Shown here: positions 3,645 to 53,739 of the stretch, one piece after another
How the letters are laid out: every line of letters starts with the position of its first letter
Numbering within the stretch: position 1 is the first letter of the stretch
NCBI GenBank assembly: GCA_002104945.1
Contig: MCFH01000078.1
Location: 1 to 64,000 of the forward strand
Direction of reading: 5' to 3'
DNA length: 64,000 nt
From: Piromyces finnis finn
Taxonomy: Eukaryota; Fungi; Neocallimastigomycota
Made by a program: the position numbers and the translations under genes
Notes under the pieces: model-generated
What the model was told of the DNA's origin: nothing
Seen by the model: only the letters and a program-made list of their open reading frames with translations
Database searches by the model: none

Positions 3645-6600
3645 TCATGGGACAAAATTATGATCTCCATTGGTTGCGCTGGCCCTCCTGGCCTGTCTTA
3701 CTGTTTCTTCAGCATTGACGCTCTTGGATGTTGCTTCAAACCTTTTGAACATTGACCATTGCTGGCCAATAGCAAAAGGCATGATTTTGGTTAGAAGTTC
3801 CGCGGTTACCGTCAAGAATGGTGTTCCTTCGTTAGTACCAGATTGAATCTGACGCTTACAAAGTTCTTTCCATTCCCTTGAATTGTAATTAATATTGTTA
3901 AAACTTCTTCCCCCAAGAAGGAATTTAAATATTTTACTGCACACACTAGAATAATCATACACATTAATATTCACCGGATTATTAGAACTATTACTATCAT
4001 TAACTAAATTACTATCTAAATTAGAATTATTATCTTCACTATTGCTATCATTACTAATATTATTATTTCTATTACTACTATTGTTATTATTACTATTGTT
4101 ACTATTACTATTGTTATTATTACTATTGTTACTATTACTATTAATATTATTACTATCTCTACTGATATTATCAATTTCATTATTATTGATAGGACTATTG
4201 GAATTACGTTGACTGAAAAAATTTAATAGCTGGACTATGGAATCATAATGTTTAATACGGATATCTCTAAATGTTGGACAATCTAATAACCAATGTTTAA
4301 TACTTTGATCTCCACACTTGCAACATGGACAGTAGTTAGGACAAACTGGATCAACAAATTTGGCAGCTTTGGCAACTCTAGCATCCAACTTGTATCCGCT
4401 TCTTGCTTTCAATAGCCAGTAGAAGCCATAGGCAAACTCTGGGTACTCATAACATAATTTAATAAAATCTTTAGTATCAATAAACTTATTATCATCATAA
4501 TATTGCGCTTTGATTGAATTCCCTTTGAGATCTTTCCAATAAAAGTTTTTAACTGCTTTAACATCTCCATGTTTCTTTAGTTTTTTATCAAGTGTCCTAC
4601 TTGATTTGCACCACGTGTATTTTCTAAATTTAGGAATGTAATTGACAAGGTGTGAGATAATACAATTTGAGTTTTTCCATTTGTTAAAACATCTAACCTG
4701 AGCTAATGCACATTTGGCTGACAATGGAGGAATATTCAAATCTTTTGAGATAGAGTATAAAGATATAAACGATACAGCTTTATGAACTCCGGCAACCCAT
4801 CGTATTCCTTTGTTAACATGCTTCTGTGCAATCCTAGACCTGGCTTTGTTGGATCCAAGTAATGGTGCAAAGTATGAAACTCTGCTAATCACTTGTGAGT
4901 TAAGTACTAGCTTTTTGAAGGGAATAGGAATATTAGGATTTCTTAAGAATTTACTGACTGAGAAAAGTCCTTTCAAAACCTTGTTATTAAGAGCTTTAAT
5001 AACTGGTTTAAGGGACAGATTCTTATCAAATGGAACACCAAGATAAGTATAACAATCAGTAGTTGGAATGGGTTGTCCTGCTAAGTAAAATGTTGGATCT
5101 CTCTTGTTCTGATTTTCTATTGATTCAGGACGAATCACCATCGTTGAACATTTCTGGATACCAAATTCCATTTCATTATACAAGGCCCATTCATTAACTC
5201 TTCTAAGCATCTTTTTTAAGCATCCTCTTGTTGGAGCACAAATAACTATATCATCTGCAAAAAGTCCACCACAGCATCGAGTGTCACCTAAACTGACTCC
5301 GAGATCTTCACACTCTTTAAATATATCATTAATAAAGAGATTAAAGAGAATAGGAGAAAGAGGGCATCCTTGACGGACTCCTTTCTTCACATCAAAAGAT
5401 TTCGAGAATTGTCCATCTAATTTGACATTAGCCTTAGATGTTAAATATAAATTTTTGATGAATTGTAAACTCTTACCTCGGATTCCTAAACAATCTAATT
5501 TATGGAGAATATTACCGATTGGGACTGAATCGTATGCTTTCCTGAGATCTAAAAAGGCCAAATATGTCTCTTTATTATCTAATTGACGTCTACGGCATAT
5601 TTCTTGGATTGAAATGAAAAGACTGATACTTTCTTCCTTTTTTCGAAAACCAAATTGTTCAGGTCTAATGAAATTATTCTTTAGACCATATTCTGAGATT
5701 CTAGTGGTGACAATTTTGGAAATCAACTTAATACCATTATTGATAAGTGATATACCTCGATAGTTATCACAATCTGTCAAATCTCCCTTCTTAGGAATAG
5801 AAACAATACTGGATTCATTCCATGAGTTGGGGAAGTCTCCATCCCAAATACGGTTGTATAATTTAAGAATAAAATTTAAACCATAAGAATCATTATCTGA
5901 AGTGGTATTACCGGAAGAATTATTATCTGTAGCATTATTAGAATCATTACTTGATGGAATTAATGCTTTGTAAAATTCAATTGGAATACCATCCGGACCT
6001 GATGCTTTATAATTCGGAGTAGAGAGGATAGCTGACTTGACTTCATCAATACTAATATCTTGGTTGATATCCCATTCATCAAGCATAGGGAGTGAAAAAC
6101 GTTTATTCGTTGGTTCTTCATACCAATGCTCCAAATCAAGACTTACGCCACTTGGATCTGATGCAAGATTTTCGAAATGATCATGCCACACATCTAGTTG
6201 TTCTTCCGTAGCAACAACTAACTCTCCATTTTTATTTTTAATTGGTTGAGCAATAAAGAAAGAATCTTTTCCAATTTTTGCAGTTTTCTTGATCCATTTC
6301 CAGGCCTTCTTAGGATTATGACTCTTCATATACTCACATCCTGTTTTAATCCAATGAAGATATTCTTGTTTCCTAAATTCATTACATCTTTTGTGGATGT
6401 AATCAATGAGCTTACGGTAGATTTTAATTCTTTTAATAAATTCATCTATATCATAAATTCTTTCTTTTTTAAATCTCTTATACAACTTCATTTTGATTTT
6501 TTGGAGATTAAAAATTTGTTGTGAAATATGAAATGAAGACTTTATAACATTATTTGCTGAGGTAATACTGAGCTCGTCTGCAATTGAAAAAGCAGTTGAA

Positions 6601-8171
6601 GTAAATTCTTTGGAAAGATCATCTGTAGAAACATTAGGATCGTTGAATTTTGCTGAAAGTATTTGGAATTTATTATGACTGAGAATAGATTCCTTTTCCT
6701 CAATACATTTTAATCTATTCCATTTCAGAATTTTCTTAGGAACGTTAAAGTCATTAGAAAAATCTTCCATAGGAATAATTTTACCATTAATAAGAAGTGG
6801 CTTATGGTCTGATACAGGATAAAAATTATTTATAAATGATCCTGAGTGAATAAGATCTTTCATCTTCGAATTGATAAGAGCATGGTCAATGTCGGAAGAT
6901 TGTTCACCTCGAGTCCAAGAGATAGTAGACCCTCTAAGCGGAAGAATTTCCCAATCTCCTAATCCATTAGTTGATAACCAGTTGGATAATTTTACTTTAG
7001 ACATATTAAAATCACCAACAAGAATCGATGGATGGGATGAATGAGTTTGTAACCACAAGCGAACTTCTAACTTTGCATGATCAACATAGATGTTGTGATG
7101 ACTATGAGGCATATAAACATTTCCAATCGAGCATTTGAATCTATTCCAGAGACTAAAAGTATAAATAGAAATAATATACTTTCCAGAGAAGTTTTCAAGT
7201 GAGGCTTGACACGAATTGTGAAAACCTAAATATAAACCTCTCATTCCCGGAACTGATTCGTCAGCTTTCTTGAAAAAGTGTCTATAGTTTCGCAAAGTAA
7301 CACGACAAGGATAATCTGTATTCGATCCAGAACCATTACCAGTTTCTTGGAAACATAAGAATAATGGTTTGAAAATAGCTGTGAAATAGCTAATACTATC
7401 TCTCTTTTCATGATTCCACCCATTGGTGTTCCAACTAAGACAAAAAGAAAAGTTATCAGGCTTGTTGGATGAGGAAGAATCGTTGCTATTATTATTATTA
7501 TTAAAGTCATCGTTATTAATGGATGATGCATCAGAGGAATAAGTAGAACTATTACTAGATGGCTGTGAAACTGAAGAACTATCAACTATTGAACTGTTAT
7601 CAGAGTTGATAGAACTATTAGAATTAATTGTTGAATGTTGAGATTGAAATTGTGTTTGCTGTAGATCTGGAATATTTTCATGATGGGAAACTTGTTGAAG
7701 ATCCTGTTGAAGATCTCGTTGAAGATCGGATTGTTGATGAGATTGTTGAACTGATTGTTGAACTGATTGTTGAAATGATTGTTGAATAGAATGTTGATGT
7801 TTATTAGAAACTAAAATTTTACGTTTGAGAGTGGAAAAAGTGTATTTGTGATTCCTTCTACTACGAGCTGAAAAGGAAATTGAGGTAACTGAAAGTTTCT
7901 TCTTTAACATGTGTAAGATTTTAATACAATCTTTTGATGAACCATGAACCTTGACTAAGAAAAAGTGATCATTGAAAGTTTGAAAATATTTAACACTAAT
8001 AACTGAATTAAATTTATCTTCTAGAATAACCTCGAGTTTTTCCCATAGCATATTTACTGACCATGATCGAATACCACGGATAAAGAAGGAGCGAATATCA
8101 TCTAAGGGGATACCATAAGACCGGGTACCACGTCTGATATAATTCTTATCTTTAATATAAAGGACTGACAT
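3645..8171 (-). CDS. LINE polyprotein, 1508 aa: N-terminal RRM-like region, Q/S/N-rich linker, APE endonuclease, reverse transcriptase, C-terminal Cys/His zinc finger, N-rich tail
   Basis: APE motifs SWNTNG, FQET, NVYMP, GDFN, IDH, SDH; RT motifs PKKGD..NYRGISL, QFGFR, FLDLRKAYDSV, GVRQGCPLSPILF, FADD, YLG; CPCCKC..KHWLLDCP. Confidence 0.97.
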   Translation of the reverse strand: MSVLYIKDKNYIRRGTRSYGIPLDDIRSFFIRGIRSWSVNMLWEKLEVILEDKFNSVISVKYFQTFNDHFFLVKVHGSSKDCIKILHMLKKKLSVTSISFSARSRRNHKYTFSTLKRKILVSNKHQHSIQQSFQQSVQQSVQQSHQQSDLQRDLQQDLQQVSHHENIPDLQQTQFQSQHSTINSNSSINSDNSSIVDSSSVSQPSSNSSTYSSDASSINNDDFNNNNNSNDSSSSNKPDNFSFCLSWNTNGWNHEKRDSISYFTAIFKPLFLCFQETGNGSGSNTDYPCRVTLRNYRHFFKKADESVPGMRGLYLGFHNSCQASLENFSGKYIISIYTFSLWNRFKCSIGNVYMPHSHHNIYVDHAKLEVRLWLQTHSSHPSILVGDFNMSKVKLSNWLSTNGLGDWEILPLRGSTISWTRGEQSSDIDHALINSKMKDLIHSGSFINNFYPVSDHKPLLINGKIIPMEDFSNDFNVPKKILKWNRLKCIEEKESILSHNKFQILSAKFNDPNVSTDDLSKEFTSTAFSIADELSITSANNVIKSSFHISQQIFNLQKIKMKLYKRFKKERIYDIDEFIKRIKIYRKLIDYIHKRCNEFRKQEYLHWIKTGCEYMKSHNPKKAWKWIKKTAKIGKDSFFIAQPIKNKNGELVVATEEQLDVWHDHFENLASDPSGVSLDLEHWYEEPTNKRFSLPMLDEWDINQDISIDEVKSAILSTPNYKASGPDGIPIEFYKALIPSSNDSNNATDNNSSGNTTSDNDSYGLNFILKLYNRIWDGDFPNSWNESSIVSIPKKGDLTDCDNYRGISLINNGIKLISKIVTTRISEYGLKNNFIRPEQFGFRKKEESISLFISIQEICRRRQLDNKETYLAFLDLRKAYDSVPIGNILHKLDCLGIRGKSLQFIKNLYLTSKANVKLDGQFSKSFDVKKGVRQGCPLSPILFNLFINDIFKECEDLGVSLGDTRCCGGLFADDIVICAPTRGCLKKMLRRVNEWALYNEMEFGIQKCSTMVIRPESIENQNKRDPTFYLAGQPIPTTDCYTYLGVPFDKNLSLKPVIKALNNKVLKGLFSVSKFLRNPNIPIPFKKLVLNSQVISRVSYFAPLLGSNKARSRIAQKHVNKGIRWVAGVHKAVSFISLYSISKDLNIPPLSAKCALAQVRCFNKWKNSNCIISHLVNYIPKFRKYTWCKSSRTLDKKLKKHGDVKAVKNFYWKDLKGNSIKAQYYDDNKFIDTKDFIKLCYEYPEFAYGFYWLLKARSGYKLDARVAKAAKFVDPVCPNYCPCCKCGDQSIKHWLLDCPTFRDIRIKHYDSIVQLLNFFSQRNSNSPINNNEIDNISRDSNNINSNSNNSNNNNSNSNNSNNNNSSNRNNNISNDSNSEDNNSNLDSNLVNDSNSSNNPVNINVYDYSSVCSKIFKFLLGGRSFNNINYNSREWKELCKRQIQSGTNEGTPFLTVTAELLTKIMPFAIGQQWSMFKRFEATSKSVNAEETVRQARRASATNGDHNFVP
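7690..7790 (-). repeat. 12-bp coding tandem repeat (QQSx / LQQD) in the LINE ORF linker
   Basis: Repeated ctgattgttgaa-like units on +; protein QQSIQQSFQQSVQQSVQQSHQQSDLQRDLQQDLQQ. Confidence 0.8.
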
Positions 8172-21728: not shown

Positions 21729-24700
21729 ATGTCGTTAAAATCAGAAATATCTGACTTGAGTTCAACAAATTCTGTATTAAATATAGCTAAAGCAGAAATA
21801 ATGAATACAAGTATAATTTTAAATCCAGAACCAATAGAATATTGCTTAACAAAATTTAATTTTGAAGCATCTAAAAACGATGAACTTTCTTTTAAAGCAA
21901 ATCAATATATACGTTTAACAAAAAAAGTAGATGGTGGTTGGTGGGAAGGAAAACTTGATGAAAGAGTATGTATACCATTTAAAATGTTTATTTTTTTATA
22001 TAAAAAAAAATTATTAAAAATTAAAATGTGTAATTAGTTGTCCAACTTGATAGACCAATACTTATTTTTTTTTAACCTATCCTATAAATAATTCTTTTTT
22101 TTTATTGCTAATTTTTATTACACTATACAATTTACTAAAGATTGGATGGTTTCCTTCAGATTTTGTAACAACAGAAATCGAGCCACAAAAACAACAGGAA
22201 TTAGCAAAAAATGATAAAGTATTAAGTACAGAAGAAATGTCAGTATTGAAATATAAGAATATCGTTTTTAATCGTTCACAACTTAAACTATCGGATTTAG
22301 ATGATGGCGGAATTGAAATTTCAGAATCAGAATTTGTACGAAATGAAATCACAAAAGATTTAATTCACTCAGAAGAAGCTTTCATAGAGGATATTAAAGT
22401 TTTCACAAATGTAGGTATCTTGTATAAATAATATAAATATGAAATTATAATTTGAATGATATTATGATTTTTTTTTTTTTTTTTTTGAAAAAGGTTTATT
22501 AAATGGCATTTAAAAGTAAATGCCATAAGATTATTCATTACTATTTTCAAAAGTTTTTAATTTTCTTTCCTTTCTTTTCAACACAATTTTTTTTATAGAG
22601 TTTTTTTTTTTTATCTTTTCAACACAATTTTTTTTATAGAGGTTTTTTTTTTATCTTTTCAACACAATTTTTTTTATAGAGTTTTTTTTTTATCTTTTCA
22701 ACACAATTTTTTTATAGAGTTTTTTTTATCCTTTCTTTTCAACACAATTTTTTTTATTAATTTTTTTTATCCTTTCTTTTCAACACAATTTTTTTTATAG
22801 AGTTTTTTTTTTATCTTTTCAACATATTAATTTTTTTTTTTTTTTTTTTTTTACCTTGTTCCATTCTTTTATTATAATAGCAATTTATAAAACCAATGGA
22901 AAATGAAACATGGATATCGTATGCTGATCGTAATGATATGTTTGGAAGATTTCCATGGCTTTCAAATTTACATATATGCTTAACATCTGAACTTAAATCA
23001 GCATTGAATCAACCTGAAGAAAAAAATCTTGGAAATTGCTTTAGTTGTGTGGTTCGTAATAAAAGGAATAAAATATTCATTAAAAAAATTATACAAACTA
23101 CTCAATATACATAATATGTATGGATTAATAACCTTCCTTTATTTTTTTTTTATAAAATTTTTTAAATGATATTAGATTCAAAATTTTGAAATTGTATATA
23201 GTGATTATTTTTCATCTTTTCCAAGAGCGATATATGTTGCTAGTCAATATAATTCAAATAATAAAATGACTACATTTTTAGTGGTAAATTTTAAAGGATG
23301 GAATAAATTGTTGTCGTTACAAAAAAGGAAAAAAAATATTAAAAAAAATTTTTTTTATTATTTCTATTTAGAATGCTGGATGTCAATCTTTACCTCCAAT
23401 TTTACATATATTATCATTTCTTCATAAACCAATTCAAAGAATAGCAAAATATTCTCCTATATTATCGGTATGTATTCATAATATAAATTCATAGTAGATA
23501 GTAGGAAGAGTGATGAATATTAATGTATTCATTGAATAATTCATTTCCTAGGAATTACTTCATTTTACTAAACCGGAAGATCCAGGTTTTAATGAATTGG
23601 TAGATATGGTGACAAAATTTAAACAACTTGAAACCTATTTAAAAACCCTTAAAAATAATGCTGAAAAACAAGAAAGATTAAAGAATTTATATAATTCTAT
23701 TGAAGATTGGGTGGTAAGTTACAAATATATATATATAATCTTCATCGTTATTGGTGGTGATTGCAATCATTAACCCATTGCAATTATTATACCTTTAAGT
23801 GTGCCTTTTAAATATTTCTGTAGCAGTTATTTATTATAAATATTTATTATTATTTATTTGCTTACTTATTAGGGTCCTGGAATAGAAAATTATGGTGAGC
23901 TTTTGCTAGAATCAAAAGTTCATTTATTAGATCCAACTTCTTCAAGTACAACACCAAAGTCTCATTTTATTTATTTATTGGAAAAATTATTTGTTGTATT
24001 AAAGCCAATTTCAAAGGCAGATAATACCAAATATAATTTAGTAGTTTCAGTTCCTGTTTGGAAGGGTACATTAAATATTATCAACGATATTAATGATTTA
24101 AATACATTCCAAGTTATCTTTTTACCATCCGAACAATCCAATAAATTAAAATCTTTAGTTATTACAGTTGCTAAACCAGAAATAAAAAAACAGGTAATAA
24201 TAAAATCTAATTTTAAATAGGATTCAGTGGTTGGTGTACTAATTTTTTTTTTTTTTTTTTAATTCATTGAATATTTTTAAATGATTTTTAGTGGGTTGAC
24301 ACCGTTAAAAGACAACTTGAAAAAAGTAATGATACAAACAATTCTTTTATAGATAACGTTTAATAATCAATTAATTTTAGGACTAATAATTAAATATATT
24401 CTTTATTATTAGATGTTCGTTTAACACTTCCTTCTCTTCCAAAGGAAATACAGGATGATTTATCTTCCAATGATACTAATCAATCCAAGAAAAAATGGAA
24501 AAAGTTGGTTCCAAAATTTGCTAGAACAAAGGGTAAAAATGAAACTACTTTACCTCCTTACACATCATCCAATTTACTTTTGAAAACCTCTGAAGGTGGT
24601 ACTCTAATATCGTCAGAATTATCTAATCTTGAACATAAAATTATCACTGAAGAAAAAAGAAAACAAGGAAAACTTTTAAAGATAAAATATGAAGAAGAGG

Positions 24701-27700
24701 AAACTCTTGATTCTCCAGCCATAAACGATTATTCTTCCGGGGTTACTTCTCAAAGTTTTGGTACTATAATGTATGATAATCTCGATCCTCTATCTCACGA
24801 TATCATTAATCGTGATTCTACTTCATCTACCGATACCTGCTCTTCTGCCTCTTCCAAAATGACCACAATTTGTACTAAATATAATGCTGTTGAAAGAAAT
24901 GCCTATAGTTTTGATAATACCTCATCCTATTCTGAAGGTACAGCGTTTACCAATGTGAATACTTCATTTAACCAAATAGGTAATCATTTCCAAATGACAC
25001 GAATGACCAATGAAAATGTTTTAGAAGCAAAAGGAAATGATGAGTTTGACAGAATGATGCGTGGTAGTAGTGTTGGTGGAGAAGAAGAAGAAGAAAAGGC
25101 AGAGGATGAATTTGATAGAATGATGCGTGGTAGTAGTGTTGGTGGAGAAGAAGAAGAAGAAGAAGAAAAGGCAGAGGATGAATTTGATAGAATGATGCGT
25201 GGTAGTAGTGTTGGCGGAGAAGAAGAAGAAGAAAAGGCAGAGGATGAATTTGATAGAATGATGCGTGGTAGTAGTGTTGGTGGAGAAGAAGAAGAAGAAA
25301 AAGAAAAGGCAGAGGATGAATTTGATAGAATGATGCGTGAAAGTTATGCTGAAAATAGAAAAGAAAAAGCAGAGAATGAACTTGATAAAAGTAGGAGTGA
25401 AAGCCGTGTTGAAGGCCAAGAAGAAGAAAATGCGAATGATAAATTTGATGGAATGATGGGTGAAAAGAGTATTGAAGAAAAAGTAGATAATACGGTAGAT
25501 AGAAGGATGAGTGAAGGTCTTGTTGAAGAAATAGCAGAGGTTGAATTTAATGGAAGGATGAGTGATCATCCTAGTGCTGAAAAAAAAGAAGACAAGAATG
25601 AACAAGTAAACACAACTTGTAACAATCCTGATTCTGCCATGGATGAACCTTTTGAATCAAGTCAATTAAAACGCATCCATCTTGATGAAACTATGGCACC
25701 ATTTTCGATGGAACCTTCTGATACTGTTAATAATCCTACTATTATTGATGATGTCAAGGAAAAAAGTCACATAGAACAAAACAAAATCAATAGGAACACT
25801 TTTGCTGCTGAACCTGTCACTATTCCATCAAACGAAGTAAATCCAATGCCAATGGAATCTACTACTAATCCTATTCCTGATACGTTGACGGAATACATGA
25901 TGACTCCTCCAATGCCTATGGAGGAATCGTCTTCACTGGGTAAAGAAGTTTTCACTACACATTTACCATTATTCAAAAAGGGTATCTTTGAACCCATAAA
26001 AGAAATGAAGAAAAGTTTTGATACAACTTCAATACTTCATCATAAGAAATCCACCACTACCTGGTTTTCCGAAGATTCTAAAAGTGAAACGGAAGAGTTA
26101 AAGCGTAGTGTCAATACAAAAGAAAGTCTTTTATATCAATCCTCAAAGGAAGATATTCATAAAGATAATGGTGTTAATATTTTATTAGAATTGGAAGAAT
26201 TAGAAAAGAGAAATAAGCATAAAAAGAACGAATTTAGTGAAATATCTTCTACCACTTCATTAAAGTCGGTTCAAATGATTTCAAAATTTAGTCCGCTTAT
26301 GCAATCCCATGATGATGTCCATCATTCATTTTCAAAATCTGAACTACCTCAATATCCTGAACATCAAGATTCAATGGGTAAAGGGGATGAAGTATTATCA
26401 GAAAGTTTTGGTCATCAAGATTCTAATCTTTATTCCATGTATAAAAACAAGAATATTGTAAAGGAAGATTTATCCACTTTATTAACTTCCAATGAATCCT
26501 CCATGCCACCTTTAGTAGAAACAAGCGTCCGTAATAAGAATATTTCCGGACAACGTGAGGATCTCCTCAACCACTGCACCGAGACCAATGAACCAGAGGT
26601 TGGCTTAGCGACATCAAAAGAAAAGGAGGAGAATATCGTAAAAGATCCACAAGCCAATGAAGTTGTTCAAGAAGAAGAAGAAGAAAAGAAGGATGCCATT
26701 ATAAATAAAATAATTGAAGCCAAGATAGCTCAAGAAATTAAAGAGAAATGTGGTGATATTAGTAATAAAGATTTAACCATTAAAATACGAATTAATGAAG
26801 AAGATACGAGTAAAGACATCAATATTGAAATTAAGATTAATCGCAATACCGAAGACAAAATTCCAGCTGTTACAATTGAAACCGAAAAAGACGATGATCA
26901 TCAAGAAGAATCGCAATTAAAGGTAATTACTGCTGCATCCGCCGTATCGGAAACTGAACCAGTGGAAAGCACCGCCGAACCAGTGTTACCATCAGAATCC
27001 ACACAAAATGTAATTATAGAACAAGAAGAAAAGAAAGAGAAGGAACAATTAAATTCATCAGGAGTAGAGGAGGGAGCATTAGTTGAAGCATCTGTTGCTG
27101 TAAGAGAGGGTAATTCCGCCAAAGATATGGCAACCCAAACTATCGAAAATCCCACCGTTCATGACGGTATCAGTGATCCCATTGTGAATAATCAACCTCT
27201 CAATACTATGGAGATGTATAAATCATCCATTCAAAAGAAGAGAAGTGCCATCATTACCACCACCGAATCTAGTAATGATTCTGCCAGTCCAACCTTTCTT
27301 CATAATCTCATCTCCTCTCCATCTACCGTAGCTACAGAAGCCACGGACGTCACTTTATCAATGATAGGAAATGAGGAAGACAAAATGCATAAACAAAGTT
27401 GTTCCATGGATTCCTATGAATCCAAGGCCACCTTGAATGGTTTCAATCTTTCCCATGGTAATTTAGGAGAAGTTGATACCTCTGTTGAGGGTTGTAGAAG
27501 CGAAAGTGAATGTCAAGAGGATCAACATTTTTCAGCCGTGAAGGATAGGAAGAAATTAAAGAGTCCGCCGTTACCTTCCACCGATTCACCTGTTATTCCA
27601 AGCATTACAACCTTTAAAGAAGAAAAAGATCATATTGTGGAATATGGACTATTGGAAAAACAATTTAAATCCTTTTTAAGCCGTCATCATTTACAAGTAG

Positions 27701-28089
27701 AAGAATTAAAGGATAATAATCGTTATTCCGATTCCTTTGTTCGTTATCAAAATGTCGACTTTAAAAAAGAAAGCGAAGTTTTTTCTACCGTTGATGTCGC
27801 CGCCACTGAAACAACAGAACAACATGGAGAACAAGAAACGGAAATGGAATTAACCTCTTCTCAGGATCATGAACTTTTCACGGAATCCTCTCTTTCTGTC
27901 ACGACGACGACCACCACCCCTATCGAGGAAACTATTCCACTATTATTAACAAAGCGTTTACCAAGTACTCTTAATCACCCTCTTCGTCATTTTCCTAGTA
28001 ATCTTAGATACCATTCAGATTCCTACACGGTTACCAACACCACCCCGGTCAATCTTAAGACTTCCCCATCGAACGATGACCTCTTGTAA
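21729..28089 (+). CDS. Rho-family GEF, SH3-DH-PH plus long acidic disordered C-terminus, about 1691 aa; exons 21729-21965, 22141-22410, 22881-23051, 23176-23283, 23372-23467, 23552-23713, 23873-24193, 24292-24325, 24413-28089
   Basis: SH3 (KFNFEASKNDELSF..GGWWEG..IGWFPSDFV), DH (RNEITKDLIHSEEAFIEDI; FLHKPIQRIAKY), DH-PH junction (IEDWVGPGIENYGELLL). All junctions GT-AG with consistent phase. Confidence 0.85.
22571..22830. repeat. Intronic minisatellite, about 40-bp unit (ttttcaacacaatttttttatagag...) in intron 2 of the GEF gene
   Basis: About six tandem copies visible. Confidence 0.85.
25039..25338 (+). repeat. Coding tandem repeat, 63-69 bp unit, DEFDRMMRGSSVGGEEEEEKAE x4 plus a partial copy
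   Basis: Visible in DNA and protein; unit length varies in the GAA tract. Confidence 0.95.
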
Positions 28090-45041: not shown

Positions 45042-45554
45042 ATGAGATTTAATGTACTCTCCTGTTTATTTTTTATAATCATATCATGTATAAATATAAT
45101 ATGTATCAGTGGTCTTTCTTTAGACGATAAAAGAAATATTGAAGCTGTAATTAAGGTTTATTTCAACGATGCAAGTGAATCTTGTAAAGATGAATATAGA
45201 CATATCCAAAAATTAATGCTTGAAAAAGATGAAAAAGCAATTCAAAATTTCTTGAGTACATATAGAGCTACGACTTGTGAAGTTAATACTGTTGCATTTA
45301 GTGAAATAAGCAAAGAATTATACAATTTTTATCGTAATTACCCAAGAGATAGAGATGGAAATAAATGTAATGAAAAGGAAGTTCAATATCGATTTGATCA
45401 ACTTGGTATATGTAGAGATGAATGCTATACTAAAATAGCAAACTTTTTATATATCTATAGATATCATTTTAGAGGTTCTCGCTTACACAGAAATCAAATG
45501 CAATTAATGGAAACTTGTGGTGATTATACAAAATTAGTAAATAGCGTTAAATAA
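45042..45554 (+). CDS. Orphan small secreted Cys-rich protein, 170 aa, intronless
   Basis: ATG-to-stop ORF of 513 nt in about 80% AT surroundings; hydrophobic N-terminal signal; six Cys in the mature part; no family recognised. Confidence 0.75.
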   Translation: MRFNVLSCLFFIIISCINIICISGLSLDDKRNIEAVIKVYFNDASESCKDEYRHIQKLMLEKDEKAIQNFLSTYRATTCEVNTVAFSEISKELYNFYRNYPRDRDGNKCNEKEVQYRFDQLGICRDECYTKIANFLYIYRYHFRGSRLHRNQMQLMETCGDYTKLVNSVK

Positions 45555-45702: not shown

Positions 45703-46758
45703 ACATTAGAAATTAAAAAAAAAAAAAAACAAAAAATGAAAAATGAAAAATGAAAAATTAAAAGAATTTTGTTCTTTATATTAAATAAATTAAAAAAAAA
45801 TAAGATAAATAAAATATACATACATATATATAAACATATTTTATATTCAATATTATATTTGATATACGTTCCATACGCCTTATTCCATATTTCGTTTTAA
45901 TTGTTTTCATTTTAGTGTTTCGTATAACTTTTCAACTTTTCATTGATTTTGTGTAACAACAATCCTTTTATTTTATTGTACCTTTATTGTTATAATGAAA
46001 TACCAAGTATTTTATATTTAATATGTATGAAGATATTAAAAAATAGATAAATAAAATAATAGAAAATATATGCAGTATTATTAGTTTTGTAATTATATTA
46101 CCATTATAAAAAAAAAAAAAAGGATTAATAGAAAAATGAATTATTAAATTTGAATTTAGTTTACAGGAAACTTTAGATAATTACTTATTATCAAATTAAA
46201 CCAAATAACTACAAATTCATAGAAAGTTTTTCAATCTATTAATTTTCATTTTGATATTATAAAAGTTAATTTAGCGTATTTTACTTCTTAATTTTCACAA
46301 CAAATGAAAGCCAGGTTTAAAAAAATGTAGGGGAAATTAATATATACAAAAAAGGTTACTGATAAAAGTTTTTTTTTTTTTTTTTATTAATTAATTATTT
46401 ATATTATGGTGAAACGTGATTATTATATATACATGTAATGTAGTATTGTAATATATAAAAGATGGAATCTATAATAACATATTCCGTTTCATATTTTATA
46501 TTGTTAGGAATGCATCTCCAGATATATTACTATTTTAATATATTGATATATAAATTTTATTAAATGTAAAGTTTAATCAAGCTATCATCTTCAACATTTT
46601 TTTTTAAAAAAAGTAACCTATTTATTTGACATATTTAATAATCAAAAAGTAGTTTAATATAAATTAATTAAATTTTTAATAAAACTTTTATAAAGTTTAT
46701 TTATATTAAAAGTTAAATGAAGAACTTGTATAAATAGTATAACAATTTTCATCTATTT

Positions 46759-46792
<34 letters not shown>

Positions 46793-48696
46793 TAAAATAA
46801 AGCAATTAAAAGAAATTAAAACAACCAAATAAAATAAAGAATAAATAAATAAAAAATATTATTATATTAAAATAATTTAATTAATAATATTTATATAAAA
46901 AAATAAAACAAAAGCAAAATAAAACAAACAAACAAACAAACAAAAAAAAAAGAAAATAAATAAAATATAAAATAAATAAAATATAAAAAAAGTCTTCATT
47001 ATACAATCAAAATAAAAAAAAACTAAACAAATAAAAATATAAATATATAAAATAATAAAAACTTATTTAAACAAAACTTAGAATTTAACTTATTATTGGT
47101 AAGTTTTTATAACAACAAAAGTTTAAATTAATTTATTTATGGATAGTAATAAAAAACACGGATGTTTCTAGTAGAAAACAATAAATAAAATAGTGAGAAC
47201 ATTTTTAAAAATTCATCTGCTAAATAGGATGAAATAATGAAAAAAAGTGTATTAGAGATGATTCATCATCATTTTTAATTTTAAAAGTTTAAAATCTTTA
47301 GATTAAAATTAAAGTTTAATTAATGGGATTTAATAAAATTAATTTAAAAAAAAAATAATACAGAAAATAAATAATAAATTAAAATGTATACATTATTGTA
47401 CACAATTCTATAAATGGAAATAATTATAAAATCCATGGCATTTTATTATGTAAATGTTTCAACATGTGTTGCAACATCTATCATTATAATAAAGAGGAAA
47501 GATTATCATGGGTAACTACAAAATAATAGAAAGAATATTAGAATATTAGAATAGTAATAAAAAAAAACAGCAATCCTTTTAAATAACAAATAATAATACT
47601 ATTAACCAAAATAAAAAAAAAATACTTTTTATTATTAAAATTTAAAAGTTCATCCAACAATTTTCATATAAGGAAATTAATAAGCATCCCATTTTTTTTA
47701 TTAATATCAAACTAAATAAAAAAAAATAGTAAAAAGAGAAATAAATATAGAAAAAAACTACTTATAATCTAACGCTCTATTCATAGTTTTATAATGGATT
47801 ATTAAAAAAAGTAAAATTAATAGACTAAGGATAGCAAAAAAAAAGTTTTAGAAAATTATTATAAAAAAAAGATAATTTTTTTTAAAAGGATAATCCTCAA
47901 AAAGGGTTATAAAAAATTAAAGAAATATTTCAAAAAAATAATAACATAAAGTAAAATTGTAAAAAATATTTATTCAAATGAATAAAATTTACTATTATTT
48001 ATGGATGTAGTAGTGTTAGAATACATACCAATGCCATTTATCGTATTACTATTTTTTTTTAAATCCCATTATTAATTTTCTTGACAAAATAACTATCAAC
48101 ACCACTACCACTACCATCACCACCACCATTCACCACTGTTTTTATTATGGATAGGAAAAAAGAGGAAACATCGATTTTTTTAATAAACTTATTTGATGCT
48201 AAAGATTAATTAATTAATATATGATACAATTGAATTTTTAGTATATTAGAATAGGTTACATAAACCTTATTTAATCATTTAATAATAAAATATATTTTGA
48301 GTATATATTAGAATATACTATTTACATATTATATTGTAAAGATAGTTTGTCAATAATTTTAATGTTTAAAAAATAAACTCATTAAAGTTTTTAACTAATA
48401 TATGTACATGTATATTATAATATATGATCAATATATTACAATCAAATACAATATATTATATTTTTTGTTCAATTATTCCTATAATAACTTTTAAAATTTT
48501 TTTATATTTAATTATAGGGAATATCTAAAAGATGATTGGTACAGAAGAAAGAATTGATAATATAAATAAAAAACACTCACGTAGATTTAACCTTACACGC
48601 ATTTTTAAAAGAATTAGAAGAAACAAAAAATCTAATTTTGTTAAATCTAATAATAAAAATACAAATCAATTAATTGTTAATAATACTGAATTAAAT

Positions 48697-50229
48697 ATGG
48701 CTAACACTCCATCTGGTAAGAGAGCTCTTATAACCATTTTAGATGGTTGGGGTATTGGTGAAAAAGGTAAGGGTGATGCTATTTACAACACCACCACTCC
48801 ATACTATGACAATCTTTTAAAGAACTACCCAAACAGTTACTTAGTTGCCTCTGGTGAAAAGGTTGGTCTTCCAGCCGGTCAAATGGGTAACTCTGAAGTT
48901 GGTCACACCAACATTGGTGCCGGTAGAGTTGTTTACCAAGATTTAGTTAAGATTAACATTGCTTGTCGTGAAGGTACTATTAAGGACAACAAGGCTTTCG
49001 CTGAATGTTTAGATTACGCTAAGAACTCTGGTAAGAAACTTCACTTTATGGGTTTAGTTTCTGATGGTGGTATTCACAGTCACCAAGATCATTTATTCAA
49101 GATGTTACAAGTTTGTAACGAAAAGGGTCTTGAAAAGGTTATTGTTCACGCCTTCACTGATGGTAGAGATTGTGACCCAAAGAGTGGTAAGGGATTCATT
49201 AAGACTTTAGTTGATGTTTGTAACGAAAACAACGCTAAGGTTGCTTCCGTTGTCGGTCGTTACTACGCTATGGACCGTGATAACCGTTGGGAACGTGTCG
49301 GTCAAGCTTACAACCTTATTGTTAAGGGTGAAGGTAAGCAAGTCACTGATTTAGTTGAAGCTGTTCAACAATCTTACGATGAAGATGTTACCGATGAATT
49401 CATTAAGCCAATTCACAACGCTAATGTTGAAGGTAACCTCGAAGAAGGTGATGCTGTTATTTTCTTCAACTTCCGTAACGATCGTGCTAAGGAACTTACT
49501 ATTTGCTTCACTCAAAGAGACATTCCAGAACAAAACTTAAAGGTTATTCCAAATCTTCACTACTGCACTATGACCCCATACGATCCAACTTTCAAGGGTC
49601 TTCACATCTTATACGACAAAGAAAACGTTGACAACACTATGGGTGAATACGTTTCTAAGCTCGGTTACAAGCAATTACGTATTGCTGAAACTGAAAAGTT
49701 CCCACACGTTACTTTCTTCTACTCTGGTGGTCGTACTGAACCATTCCCAAATGAAGACCGTATTTTAATTCCATCTCCAAAGGTCGCTACTTACGATTTA
49801 AAGCCAGAAATGAGTATTTACGAAATTACTGAAAAGTTAGAAGAAGCTATTAAGAAGGAAGAATACGCTTTAATTGTCTTAAACTACGCCAATGGTGATA
49901 TGGTTGGTCACACTGGTGTTTACGATGCCATTGAAAAGGCTGTTAAGTACGTCGATGACTGTTTAAGCAAGATGATTGAAACTGCTAAGGAACACGATTA
50001 CGAAGTTATTATCATTGCTGATCACGGTAACTGTGATAACGCTATTAACCCAGATGACACTCCAAACACTCAACACTCTACCAATGTTGTTCCATTCTTC
50101 TACATTACCGACAGAAAGGATGTTAAGATTCAACCAGGTCAATTATCTGATGTTGCTCCAACTGTCTGTAAGATTTTAGGTCTCGATGTTCCAAAGGAAA
50201 TGACCGGAAAGCAACTTATTGATTTCTAA
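48697..50229 (+). CDS. gpmI: 2,3-bisphosphoglycerate-independent phosphoglycerate mutase, 510 aa, intronless, Bacteroidota-like; in-frame ORF extends upstream to 48532
   Basis: [16 protein letters not shown] (catalytic Ser), [53 protein letters not shown]. Highly biased codon usage begins at the ATG at 48697. Confidence 0.97.
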
Positions 50230-52529
50230 ATGAATTAACATTGTATATTGTAACATTTACATTTTATTATTCCCACCATAATAATAATCAGTAACACATT
50301 ATTTATTTATTCTTTTCATTAATAATAACTATCTTTCAAAATAAGAAAAATAAAAAAAAGAATAATCATTTAAAAAATTAGCCTATACCATCAAAAAATA
50401 AAATTGGCTATTTTTTCATTATTTTTTTTTATACATACAATAGATAAAATAACACACCTAATACTATAAAAAATTAAAAGAATCGTTTAGTGAAAAATTT
50501 AAAAAATAATAATAATATGTTATAAAAAGTACAAACAAATAATTAAATAATTAATTAGGCTTGTGAAATAATTAATTCAAATCATTTAAAAAAAAAAACA
50601 AATACACAAAAATAAAATTTAAAAAATAAACATTATAATTAACACATTGTGTCTTTTAAGTAGAGTGTCCAAAAAAGGTAAAATACAGAATTTTAAAATT
50701 AAACAGAATTCTCTCTCTCTTTTTTTTAAAAGCTGTAAACTTTCTATATTAAAAAAGCGGTAAACTTTTTTATAGTTGCCGTTTATTTAAAAAAAAAGAT
50801 GAATGTTTATAAAATTTTATTGGTTGAAAGTGTGAAAAGTCTAACCATATCATTGTTACTTTTAACAGACACATACACGCTCTCTAAAGCCATTTTTATT
50901 TTTTATCTTTTAAAAAAAGTAACACAAATTAAATTGTGTAACGTATTGTTAGTAATGATTTTAAAGTTATGGAGGTTGTTGTTTGGAAGGATGAAAAGAT
51001 CAATTGATAGGTAAAATGGAACCTTTTAAAGTAGGGAAAGACTGTGTTTTTTTATTTTCTATAATTTATGGTTGAATAATAAGACACCACCATTCCTTCA
51101 AATTTGATCACACTTAAAGTCATGTGATTATAAGTATTGATAACATTAAACTATGCTTTTAAAGATTTGATAAATAATTTATATATAATAAATACAATTT
51201 ATTCTATCTCAATATATTTTGATATATATTAATATGGAAGTGGCTTTTTATTCTCCAATCAAAATCTAGATGATGCAATTATTTTATAAAAATAATCTCT
51301 TTTTTTAAATAATACTACAAAAATGATGGTTTGGTATAACAAATAAAATTCTGGAAATTAAATTGATATATTTATTATTTTATTTATAGTATTATATTTT
51401 AATATATTATGATAATATATTAAATGTAACTATTTTTATTGTCGTTCCAAACCCATTTTTTATGGTGAGTTTTTAGGAGAAGGAAAAGAATAGACTAGCC
51501 ATAGCCATGCTTCTATGAATTTTTTTTTTTTTTTCATGGTTTATCTTTTGTATACATTTTGTAATACATTCATTATCAATAGTTTTACGTTTATCAAGGA
51601 ATCTCATAATAATTTTTATTAATAATAATTATTCTATATATTTTATCTCTACTACGATGATGCTGATTAATAATTAATAGTAATTTTATTATTATTATTA
51701 TCAAATTTTTTATAATAATTCCCTCATCAAAAAAAAAAAAAAAAAAATAATTATTATATATTATATATATAGAAATTATTCAAAATTTTTTATTATTATT
51801 TGTTCATTCGGTTGTTTTATTATATTAAAAATTAAAATAAAAGGAAGAATAATAAATTAATTATATATTACAAATAAATTTTGGTATAATAAAAAATTTT
51901 TGTTTTTTTTTAAATAAAATAAAATCAAAAAAAAAAAAAAAAAGTAAAAAAAAAAATAAAATAAAAAGGGAATATAAAGAAAGAAAATAAAAATAAAATT
52001 AAAAAAAAATTAATTATTATTTATTTTAGGTAATGAATATAAAGATTTATTTTAAAATAGTTAAAAGAAAAGATGAGAATATTTTATTAAATCAAATTTG
52101 GGAGATTAAAAAAAAAAGTATTGATGACAAAATATATATTAACCAAGAATCAAATAAAATTGTAGATATGTAAAATATTATAAAACGTTTTTTTTTTTTT
52201 TTTTAGGAAAAAGAGAAAGGAAAAGAAATTGTGTGATATATAAAAAATGATATATAAAAAACGAAAAACAATAAATATAATATTGAAGGATTTATGAAGA
52301 AAAGAAAACGAAAAGAAAAAAAAAACTCATTTCAAAATAATCAATCTATTTTACGAATCTTACCATTGTTTTTTTTTTATCTTTAAAGATTTAAATTAGA
52401 AAAAGCAATAAATACAATCTCAATTACTTTTTTATTTAACAAAAAAAAAAAAGCTTTTTTATATATATATAAAAGAAAAAAAAACCATTATTAATATTTT
52501 ATTATTTTATTTTATCAAAAGATTTCAAA

Positions 52530-53739
52530 ATGGTTAGACTTTCAGTTAAAGCTTTATGTTTAAGTGCTGTTGCCTTAGTTTCTGCTAAGTCACCTTTACT
52601 TGCTTGGACTAACAAGAAGTATATATTATATTACAAATAAAATTTTTTATTATTTCAATAATAATATTATAATAGGTTGAAAAATGAATTGATGATTGTG
52701 TAATCGTTATATAGTGTAAATGCTAAAAAATAATGAATTAATAATTTTATATTAAAAAAATTAATCTAGTGTCGCTGACGTCGCTTCTGCTAACTACGCC
52801 AACGCTGAAGATGCTGCTAATTTATTAGCTCCATTCTTAGAATCTTGCCCAAAATCTGTTTTAATTTTTGATCAACCAGAGGTAAATTTCAATGTATTCA
52901 GTATAAAAAACGATATAAATAAAAGTAACTATCGGGGAATATCAAACTAATTTGTAAATTATTAAAAAATAATATTTAAAAATGATTGCCAATAAAAAAA
53001 ATAGTTCAACATTGGTGAATTAAATGAAATGAGAGCTGTCAAGAGTGCTTTTGAAGCCGCTAAGTCTTCTATTCAAGTTGGTCACTTTGATACCGAAAAT
53101 GTTAACAATGTCGATACTATTGTTAACACTATCGCTGAAAAGTGCTCCAACACTATTGCTACTGAAGGTATGTATTGTTTAAATTTTTTTTTGAAACTGT
53201 TAAATTTTATTAATGGAAATGAATATTAAAAAAATAAAATAGACAAGGTTGGTGAATCTGATTCTATTGTTATCAAGAAGTTATCCGACTACCTTTCCGA
53301 ATCTCAAAGAATTGTTAAGGATTTATTAGACAAGGTTAACGACGATACTCTTGTTGTTTTCGTTTCTAACAACAACGTTAACACTCAAAAATTAGTAAGT
53401 AGTTTCGAACAAACAACTATAAAGAATAAAAAAAGTAGTGTGATAATAGTGAATAATTTTATTAAATCCAATTTTTTTTAATAATATTAGTTGGTTCAAC
53501 GTCAAGAACAACAAGCTAACAACCAAACTGTTCCAGAACAAAATGCTCAAGCCAACAACCAAACTGTTGTTGCTGTTAAGGAAGATCACATTTTCGGTAA
53601 ATACGTTTTATTCAACAAGGCTATCTTCGAAGGTATAGTTGGTATGGCTCCAATTATCTTAATTGCTTTAATTGGTGTTTCCTGGTTAATTTCTGTTCAA
53701 ACTCCAACCAGATTCATCGCTAAGAAGAAGGAAAATTAA
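52530..53739 (+). CDS. Voa1/Ac45/Big1-like type I ER membrane protein (V-ATPase assembly/accessory factor); exons 52530-52618, 52770-52881, 53005-53167, 53243-53394, 53491-53739
   Basis: Signal peptide then SPLLAWTN; lumenal C-P-K-S-V-L-I-F-D-Q-P; C-terminal YVLFNKAIFEG-TM-SVQTPTRF resembling the Ac45/VOA1 TM region; terminal KKEN dilysine motif. Confidence 0.7.

Follow-up and report, generated by a model that had tools for sequence, protein, structure and literature searches.

The locus described here raises the question of whether a core glycolytic step of the gut fungus Piromyces finnis is carried out by a gene taken from bacteria and, if so, what has become of that gene in its new host. 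The window, a 64,000-nucleotide stretch of contig MCFH01000078.1 read on the forward strand, was described in an initial annotation, made from the sequence alone, as containing an intronless cofactor-independent phosphoglycerate mutase (iPGM) among intron-rich neighbours. It was proposed that the gene had been acquired from gut Bacteroidota, that it had replaced a step of central metabolism, and that it was old, ameliorated and not contamination; a homology search with a maximum likelihood (ML) phylogeny and a check for a second dPGM or iPGM in the genome were named as ways of deciding the matter. The answer is built up here from the identity of the enzyme, the structure of its gene, the origin of its sequence and its place in the genome.

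The enzyme and its domains

The gene lies within a single uninterrupted open reading frame of 565 codons at 48532-50229 on the forward strand. The Met at 48697 is codon 56 of this frame and aligns with the N-termini of bacterial iPGMs, and the part of the frame that follows it has two features that concern the enzyme itself.

48697-50229, forward strand: core iPGM (GpmI) coding sequence, 510 aa plus stop, a bacterial-type enzyme by Pfam, TIGR01307 and alignment to 1EJJ
48952-49584, forward strand: the transferase domain iPGM_N (PF06415), an insertion within the phosphatase domain of metalloenzyme type (PF01676) at 48718-50187

Both Pfam profiles match the 510-aa product (iPGM_N, PF06415, 1e-80; Metalloenzyme, PF01676, 1e-74) and give the two-domain architecture, with PF01676 spanning residues 8-497 and PF06415 residues 86-296. 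The score against the equivalog TIGR01307 is 657.5 bits, for a cut-off of 330.65, and residues 9-508 of 510 are covered; in an AlphaFold model the pLDDT of the core is mostly 80-97. For the catalytic, Mn-binding and substrate-binding positions, the residue set of the 1EJJ literature was used. The catalytic Ser nucleophile and the seven Mn ligands of this set are conserved (D12, S62, D403, H407, D444, H445 and H462 in 1EJJ numbering, corresponding to D16, S66, D401, H405, D442, H443 and H460 of the query), as are the substrate-binding residues H123, R153, D154, R185, R191, R261, R264 and K336 of 1EJJ, and most active-site residues are invariant across an alignment of 34 sequences. Judged from its sequence, the window protein is an intact cofactor-independent phosphoglycerate mutase (iPGM/GpmI), predicted to be Mn-dependent and to interconvert 3- and 2-phosphoglycerate, without the cofactor, via a phosphoserine intermediate.

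Comparison with iPGMs in the PDB places the protein closer to bacterial than to eukaryotic enzymes. The iPGMs of Geobacillus stearothermophilus (1EJJ) and Bacillus anthracis (2IFY) align over their full length at 496-500 bits and have in common with the window protein the Ser62 nucleophile, both Mn sites and the substrate-binding Arg/Lys/His residues, but they are ~50% identical to it, come from another phylum and are without an N-terminal extension. The eukaryotic structures (Caenorhabditis/filarial 5KGN/5KGL, Trypanosoma 3NVL and Leishmania 3IGY) are of the same family and fold and yet more distant, the nematode enzymes scoring 423 bits and the trypanosomatid enzymes 225-244 bits, against 500 for Bacillus and ~770 for Bacteroidales. 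The window protein is without the character of a plant- or kinetoplastid-type iPGM.

The 5' leader and the upstream reading frame

The description of the gene as intronless among intron-rich neighbours stands in part: the neighbours are multi-exon and the coding sequence has no introns, but it is the coding sequence alone that is intronless, because spliced transcripts of relatives show an intron in the 5' leader. The Anaeromyces transcripts L005 and L006 match the A. robustus genome (L135) with 99.8-100% identity and skip 2,621 nt of it; exon 1 ends ...TTATTTATTG, the intron runs GTAGGT...TATAG, and exon 2 begins 26 nt before the upstream ATG. Comparison of the Piromyces-type transcript L010 with the Piromyces E2 genome (L138) gives the same donor motif and an acceptor 14 nt before the upstream ATG. 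A TTAGGG block, tried as the acceptor in all lineages, was only partly right, since the acceptor lies at one or other of these two distances (14 nt in the Piromyces type, 26 nt in Anaeromyces). The donor motif, TTATT(A/T)ATTG followed at the splice site by GTA(A/G)GT, is common to Anaeromyces, Piromyces E2, one of the Neocallimastix copies (N. californiae copy B) and the window, in which the donor at 47099 reads ...CTTATTATTG followed by GTAAGT, and the acceptor, TATAG followed by GG, ends at 48517. Across the relatives and the window, the leader introns, including the putative one, are GT-AG and 1.4-2.6 kb long. From the transcripts of the relatives we infer the following arrangement upstream of the core.

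46785-47098 (start approximate), forward strand: putative exon 1, a 5' leader that is 60% A and free of ATG, to which the leaders of transcripts L004 and L005 align at 67-74%
47099-48517, forward strand: putative 5'UTR spliceosomal intron of 1419 nt, GTAAGT...TATAG, with donor and acceptor conserved with the relatives' transcripts
48518-48531, forward strand: the first 14 nt of exon 2, 5'UTR that follows the putative acceptor, where L010 joins exon 1 at exactly the same point
48532-48696, forward strand: in-frame upstream extension of 55 codons, basic and low-complexity, with an FKRIRRNKK-type motif, open in seven lineages

The 14 nt at 48518-48531 belong to a block just 5' of the first AUG that is conserved in all lineages. 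Two further observations concern the region upstream. A poly-T tract of ~35 nt (~46745-46780) stands directly before the A-rich, ATG-free leader, and it may be that the promoters and leaders of highly expressed gut-fungal genes are in general built in this way, from such a tract followed by an A-rich, AUG-free leader. Within the putative leader intron, a C-rich imperfect repeat of trinucleotide type (CAC/CAT units) at 48100-48140 stands out from its AT-rich surroundings.

The open frame begins 165 nt upstream of the start given in the initial annotation, and which of the two in-frame AUGs is used bears on the form in which the enzyme is made. In seven transcript contigs of orthologous genes the leader, 65-427 nt long and A-rich like that of the window, is free of ATG, so that the ATG at 48532 would be the first AUG of the spliced mRNA; in the window, 46750-47098 is likewise free of ATG. 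From this AUG to the bacterial-type Met, a frame of 51-56 codons runs without a stop in seven lineages, namely the window, Piromyces E2, Anaeromyces, N. californiae copy B and three known from metatranscriptomes, and the same holds for more than 15 database variants; the other two frames of the extension contain 4 and 15 stops. Residues 1 to ~33 of the extension (MIGxEE...FKRIRRNKK) are nearly constant, and the remainder is an N/K-rich linker that changes length in frame; some of these indels may have arisen by triplet-repeat slippage. The genus Neocallimastix, which has at least two iPGM paralogues, provides in this pair a natural test of whether the upstream frame matters. Copy A (N. lanati, L137:5822-6000), at the ancestral syntenic locus, has a recognisable remnant of the extension, interrupted by a stop at codon 8 and by frame breaks, and copy B (N. 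californiae, L136:6001-6156), which is non-syntenic, has a 52-codon extension intact together with the leader-intron donor motif.

It is a serious possibility, with a probability a little short of even, that the upstream 55-codon frame is plain 5'UTR, perhaps a nucleic-acid element or proximal promoter, and that the enzyme is made almost wholly from the AUG at 48697, leaving the frame no role at the protein level. The composition of the extension is that of a UTR (GC 0.19, GC3 0.09), and the strong codon bias of the core is absent from it, AAA/AAG being 7/0 as against 3/39 in the core. Its pN/pS of 0.81 does not differ from 1 (p = 0.27; whole extension, codon-aware alignment, three independent pairs), a 35-nt block in the region is identical at all codon positions across genera, and AlphaFold gives the extension pLDDT <50, that is, disorder, with a short helix at residues 22-30. 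In addition, several public annotations begin at the second Met, whose AUG stands in an optimal context with A at -3 and G at +4. Against this reading, the upstream AUG, which has an A at -3, comes first in the spliced mRNA after an AUG-free leader of 65-427 nt, and its frame has stayed open with in-frame length changes only in seven lineages, when 55 open codons would be expected by chance at this composition with a probability of ~0.002 (shuffling). Furthermore, the stop at codon 8 and the frame breaks are confined to one Neocallimastix paralogue and the sister copy keeps the frame.

On this evidence the production of a long isoform in meaningful amounts is judged slightly more likely than not, and a specific role for the extension tail is considered rather unlikely. 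A fuller proposal, put forward tentatively and also thought rather unlikely, is that fungal leader sequence would have supplied the acquired enzyme with a new N-terminal tail, that two isoforms would arise from the two in-frame AUGs, that the basic disordered tail, with its NLS-like or amphipathic FKRIRRNKK helix, would redirect part of the enzyme elsewhere or to a partner, and that the Neocallimastix duplication would have split these roles between a long-capable and an extension-decayed copy. Selection at the amino-acid level was considered and set aside, the first 32 codons giving an omega of 0.3-0.7 on tiny counts and the full extension giving no significant result. A canonical hydrogenosomal or mitochondrial presequence or a PTS2 was rejected by inspection, on account of acidic residues at positions 5, 6 and 9 and a misfit in spacing. 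The extension peptide was sought elsewhere in the genome and was not found.

Origin among the Bacteroidales

Homologues of the enzyme were sought in a word-indexed search of 5.8 billion proteins. The best six matches are gut-fungal orthologues with 86-94% identity; those with names come from Piromyces sp. E2, Anaeromyces robustus and Neocallimastix species, and the closest named orthologues are from Piromyces. Past these orthologues, all of the best 120 matches are Bacteroidales-like, with 53-67% identity, the named ones being Bacteroidales or termite gut metagenome in every case, and apart from the gut fungi no eukaryote is found among the best 120. Full-length Bacteroidales GpmI matches with 64-67% identity number in the hundreds (Muribaculaceae, Duncaniella, Barnesiella, Bacteroides MAGs and termite gut). 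Of the 80 loci found in a pattern scan that covered the prokaryotes at one genome per species, 78 belong to named Bacteroidota, and the motifs quoted in the initial annotation as Bacteroidota-like are present both in the window protein and in the Bacteroidota consensus.

Two sets of matches call for separate comment. Five proteins of 543-604 aa with 53-62% identity (P0007-P0011), considered as non-fungal eukaryotic relatives, were rejected as such, being Prevotella-like sequences with internal segments duplicated; they are probably artefacts of metagenome assembly, and they outrank genuine full-length Bacteroidales matches by bit score. The iPGM of contig CAZXFT010000006.1, titled as an uncultured Bifidobacteriaceae MAG (L089), groups with Chitinophagales in a quick tree (SH-aLRT 93), and this contig is probably mis-binned or the MAG chimeric.

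An ML tree was inferred with IQ-TREE under LG+C20 PMSF from 52 rows and 512 columns, the rows being Bacteroidota and gut fungi only, with no other bacterial phylum and no other fungal, plant, kinetoplastid or nematode iPGM. The gut-fungal sequences form a clade with support of 100/100 on a stem of 0.66 substitutions per site, and the sister of this clade is MDD2798477.1, a protein from an uncultured Bacteroidales MAG (96/89). The pair is nested in Bacteroidales-type sequences through nodes supported at 72/93, 86/77, 91/93, 98/82 and 100/99, some of which are thus moderate (bootstrap 72-91), and the donor is resolved to order and not to family; outside the Bacteroidales and the fungi stand Flavobacteriales, Cytophagales, Sphingobacteriales and Chitinophagales. 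An approximately unbiased (AU) test rejected a clade of the 29 Bacteroidales-type rows without the fungi (p = 0.0037, delta lnL 44.6), the Bacteroidales group having been delimited partly after the tree was seen.

Some eukaryotic iPGMs are bacterial-like, and it could be argued from this, and from the lack of any iPGM of other fungi among the tree rows, that the gene came down by vertical descent as a fungal or eukaryotic iPGM and merely resembles bacterial ones, or else that it passed from fungus to bacteria. This is very improbable, given that the fungi sit several nodes deep in the Bacteroidales in a tree that otherwise follows the Bacteroidota orders, that a fungal clade outside the Bacteroidales is rejected by the AU test, that the best 120 matches are free of eukaryotes other than gut fungi and that the eukaryotic iPGMs of the PDB score far lower; in a published tree, too, fungi are set apart from this clade. 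The evidence instead supports the reading of the fungal iPGM as an old transfer from Bacteroidota, specifically Bacteroidales, which replaced the native step. The acquisition from gut Bacteroidota claimed at the outset is thereby borne out by the best non-fungal matches, by the nesting and by the AU test. The GpmI proteins of present Bacteroidales (Muribaculaceae, Barnesiella and Prevotellaceae) are 504-507 aa long and have the same domain order and catalytic residues at 62-67% identity, but the fungal gene differs from theirs in its host codon usage, its intron-bearing eukaryotic leader, its possible N-terminal tail and its long stem.

Integration, age and replacement

Two neighbours of the gene are informative with regard to its age.

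45042-45554, forward strand: upstream syntenic neighbour, an ORF of 170 aa without a Pfam match, compared by tblastn
52511-53736, forward strand: downstream syntenic neighbour, a multi-exon gene of BIG1_N / Ac45-VOA1_TM type, compared by exon-wise tblastn

A homologue of the first lies upstream of iPGM in Anaeromyces robustus and Piromyces sp. E2, and a homologue of the second lies downstream of iPGM in Anaeromyces, Piromyces E2 and N. lanati. The presence of the same flanking genes in Piromyces, Anaeromyces and Neocallimastix means that the insertion is old, and indicates one integration that predates the divergence of the three genera. That the window is fungal is seen from two further genes in it, one for a GH9 cellulase that bears three fungal dockerins (CBM10) and one for a helicase of eIF4A type; in both the ORF begins mid-domain, and the genes are therefore multi-exon. 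The relative synonymous codon usage (RSCU) of the iPGM core correlates with that of the GH9 exons (r = 0.93) and the eIF4A exons (r = 0.94), less with that of two other long ORFs of the window (r = 0.56-0.60), and not with that of the Bacteroidales homologues (r ~0), and its GC3 is 0.34 as against 0.55-0.62 in the latter. The GC content of the gene is 0.36-0.41 and that of its flanks 0.12-0.21.

In view of the host flanks, the synteny and the eukaryotic features of the gene, iPGM is physically integrated in the fungal genome. The idea that it is bacterial contamination or a mis-assembled bacterial fragment, to which the lack of an intron in the coding sequence and a GC roughly twice that of the flanks might lend some colour, has a negligible probability and is already refuted by the synteny across genera and by the spliced, leader-intron-bearing transcripts of the relatives, and it is further opposed by the position of the gene amid fungal multi-exon genes on a 64-kb AT-rich contig, by codon usage that is that of host genes and not of Bacteroidales, and by a best bacterial identity of only 64-67%. 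The claims that the gene is old, is ameliorated towards the codon usage of the eIF4A and GH9 genes and lies in host-like AT-rich DNA are thus all upheld.

A genome-wide six-frame search of the draft assembly (56.46 Mb, 232 contigs), in which a highly fragmented gene could escape detection, found one iPGM_N locus and no match to the dPGM model TIGR01258. Of the assembly's eight PF00300 matches, which comprise an FBPase-2-like domain and generic histidine phosphatases, none qualifies as a dPGM, each scoring far short of the dPGM cut-offs; this includes a multi-exon one on contig 189 that was scored exon by exon. As far as the assembled sequence can tell, the window gene is the only recognisable phosphoglycerate mutase of the genome, and no native enzyme appears to remain beside it, as expected of xenologous replacement and in agreement with the proposal that a step of central metabolism had been replaced.

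It is considered very probable, taking these lines together, that the window holds the sole, intact, Bacteroidales-derived iPGM of a gut fungus, which entered the common ancestor of the three genera, replaced an earlier enzyme and became fully domesticated with a spliced leader and an upstream extension. A gut Bacteroidales iPGM gene would have passed to the common ancestor of Piromyces, Anaeromyces and Neocallimastix and would have replaced whatever enzyme ran the 3-/2-phosphoglycerate step before. It would then have taken on the codon usage of highly expressed host genes, and would have gained a fungal promoter, a long A-rich leader interrupted by a spliceosomal intron and an in-frame extension of 51-56 codons starting at the first AUG of the mRNA.

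The transfer of iPGM from Bacteroidales to gut fungi is already known. In a preprint that later appeared in Appl Environ Microbiol (Murphy et al. 2019, bioRxiv 10.1101/487215), the phosphoglycerate mutase genes of gut fungi are described as bacterial in origin, with no fungal homologues found, and as a case of 'xenologous replacement'; the 2,3-BPG-independent enzyme is listed among the horizontally acquired ones in Figure 4, and its tree, Fig. S13, is labelled 'Bacteroidales & Neocallimastigomycota'. The four gut-fungal assemblies then available were mapped in that work and an HGT frequency was given for Piromyces finnis, and the gene family, fungal phylum, donor order and conclusion of replacement are the same as here. 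The available text of Murphy et al. 2019 makes no mention of a 5'UTR intron, an upstream extension or paralogue decay; the term 'N-terminal' does not occur in it, and introns figure only as genome-wide averages. What is new here is accordingly modest, namely the leader intron and the conserved upstream frame. To a published example in which a central glycolytic step is run by a bacterial gene across a whole fungal phylum, the present analysis adds no new principle, but it offers a compact illustration of the way in which a gene of bacterial origin turns into a eukaryotic one, through host codon bias, an AUG-free leader, a conserved 5'UTR intron and a recruited upstream frame. A bacterial-type iPGM, which the animal host does not have, might also serve as a selective marker for gut fungi or as a target in them.

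A last observation concerns the long ORFs at 24505-28089 on the forward strand (1194 aa, with no Pfam match) and at 3645-8171 on the reverse strand (1508 aa), the codon usage of which is unlike that of highly expressed genes.
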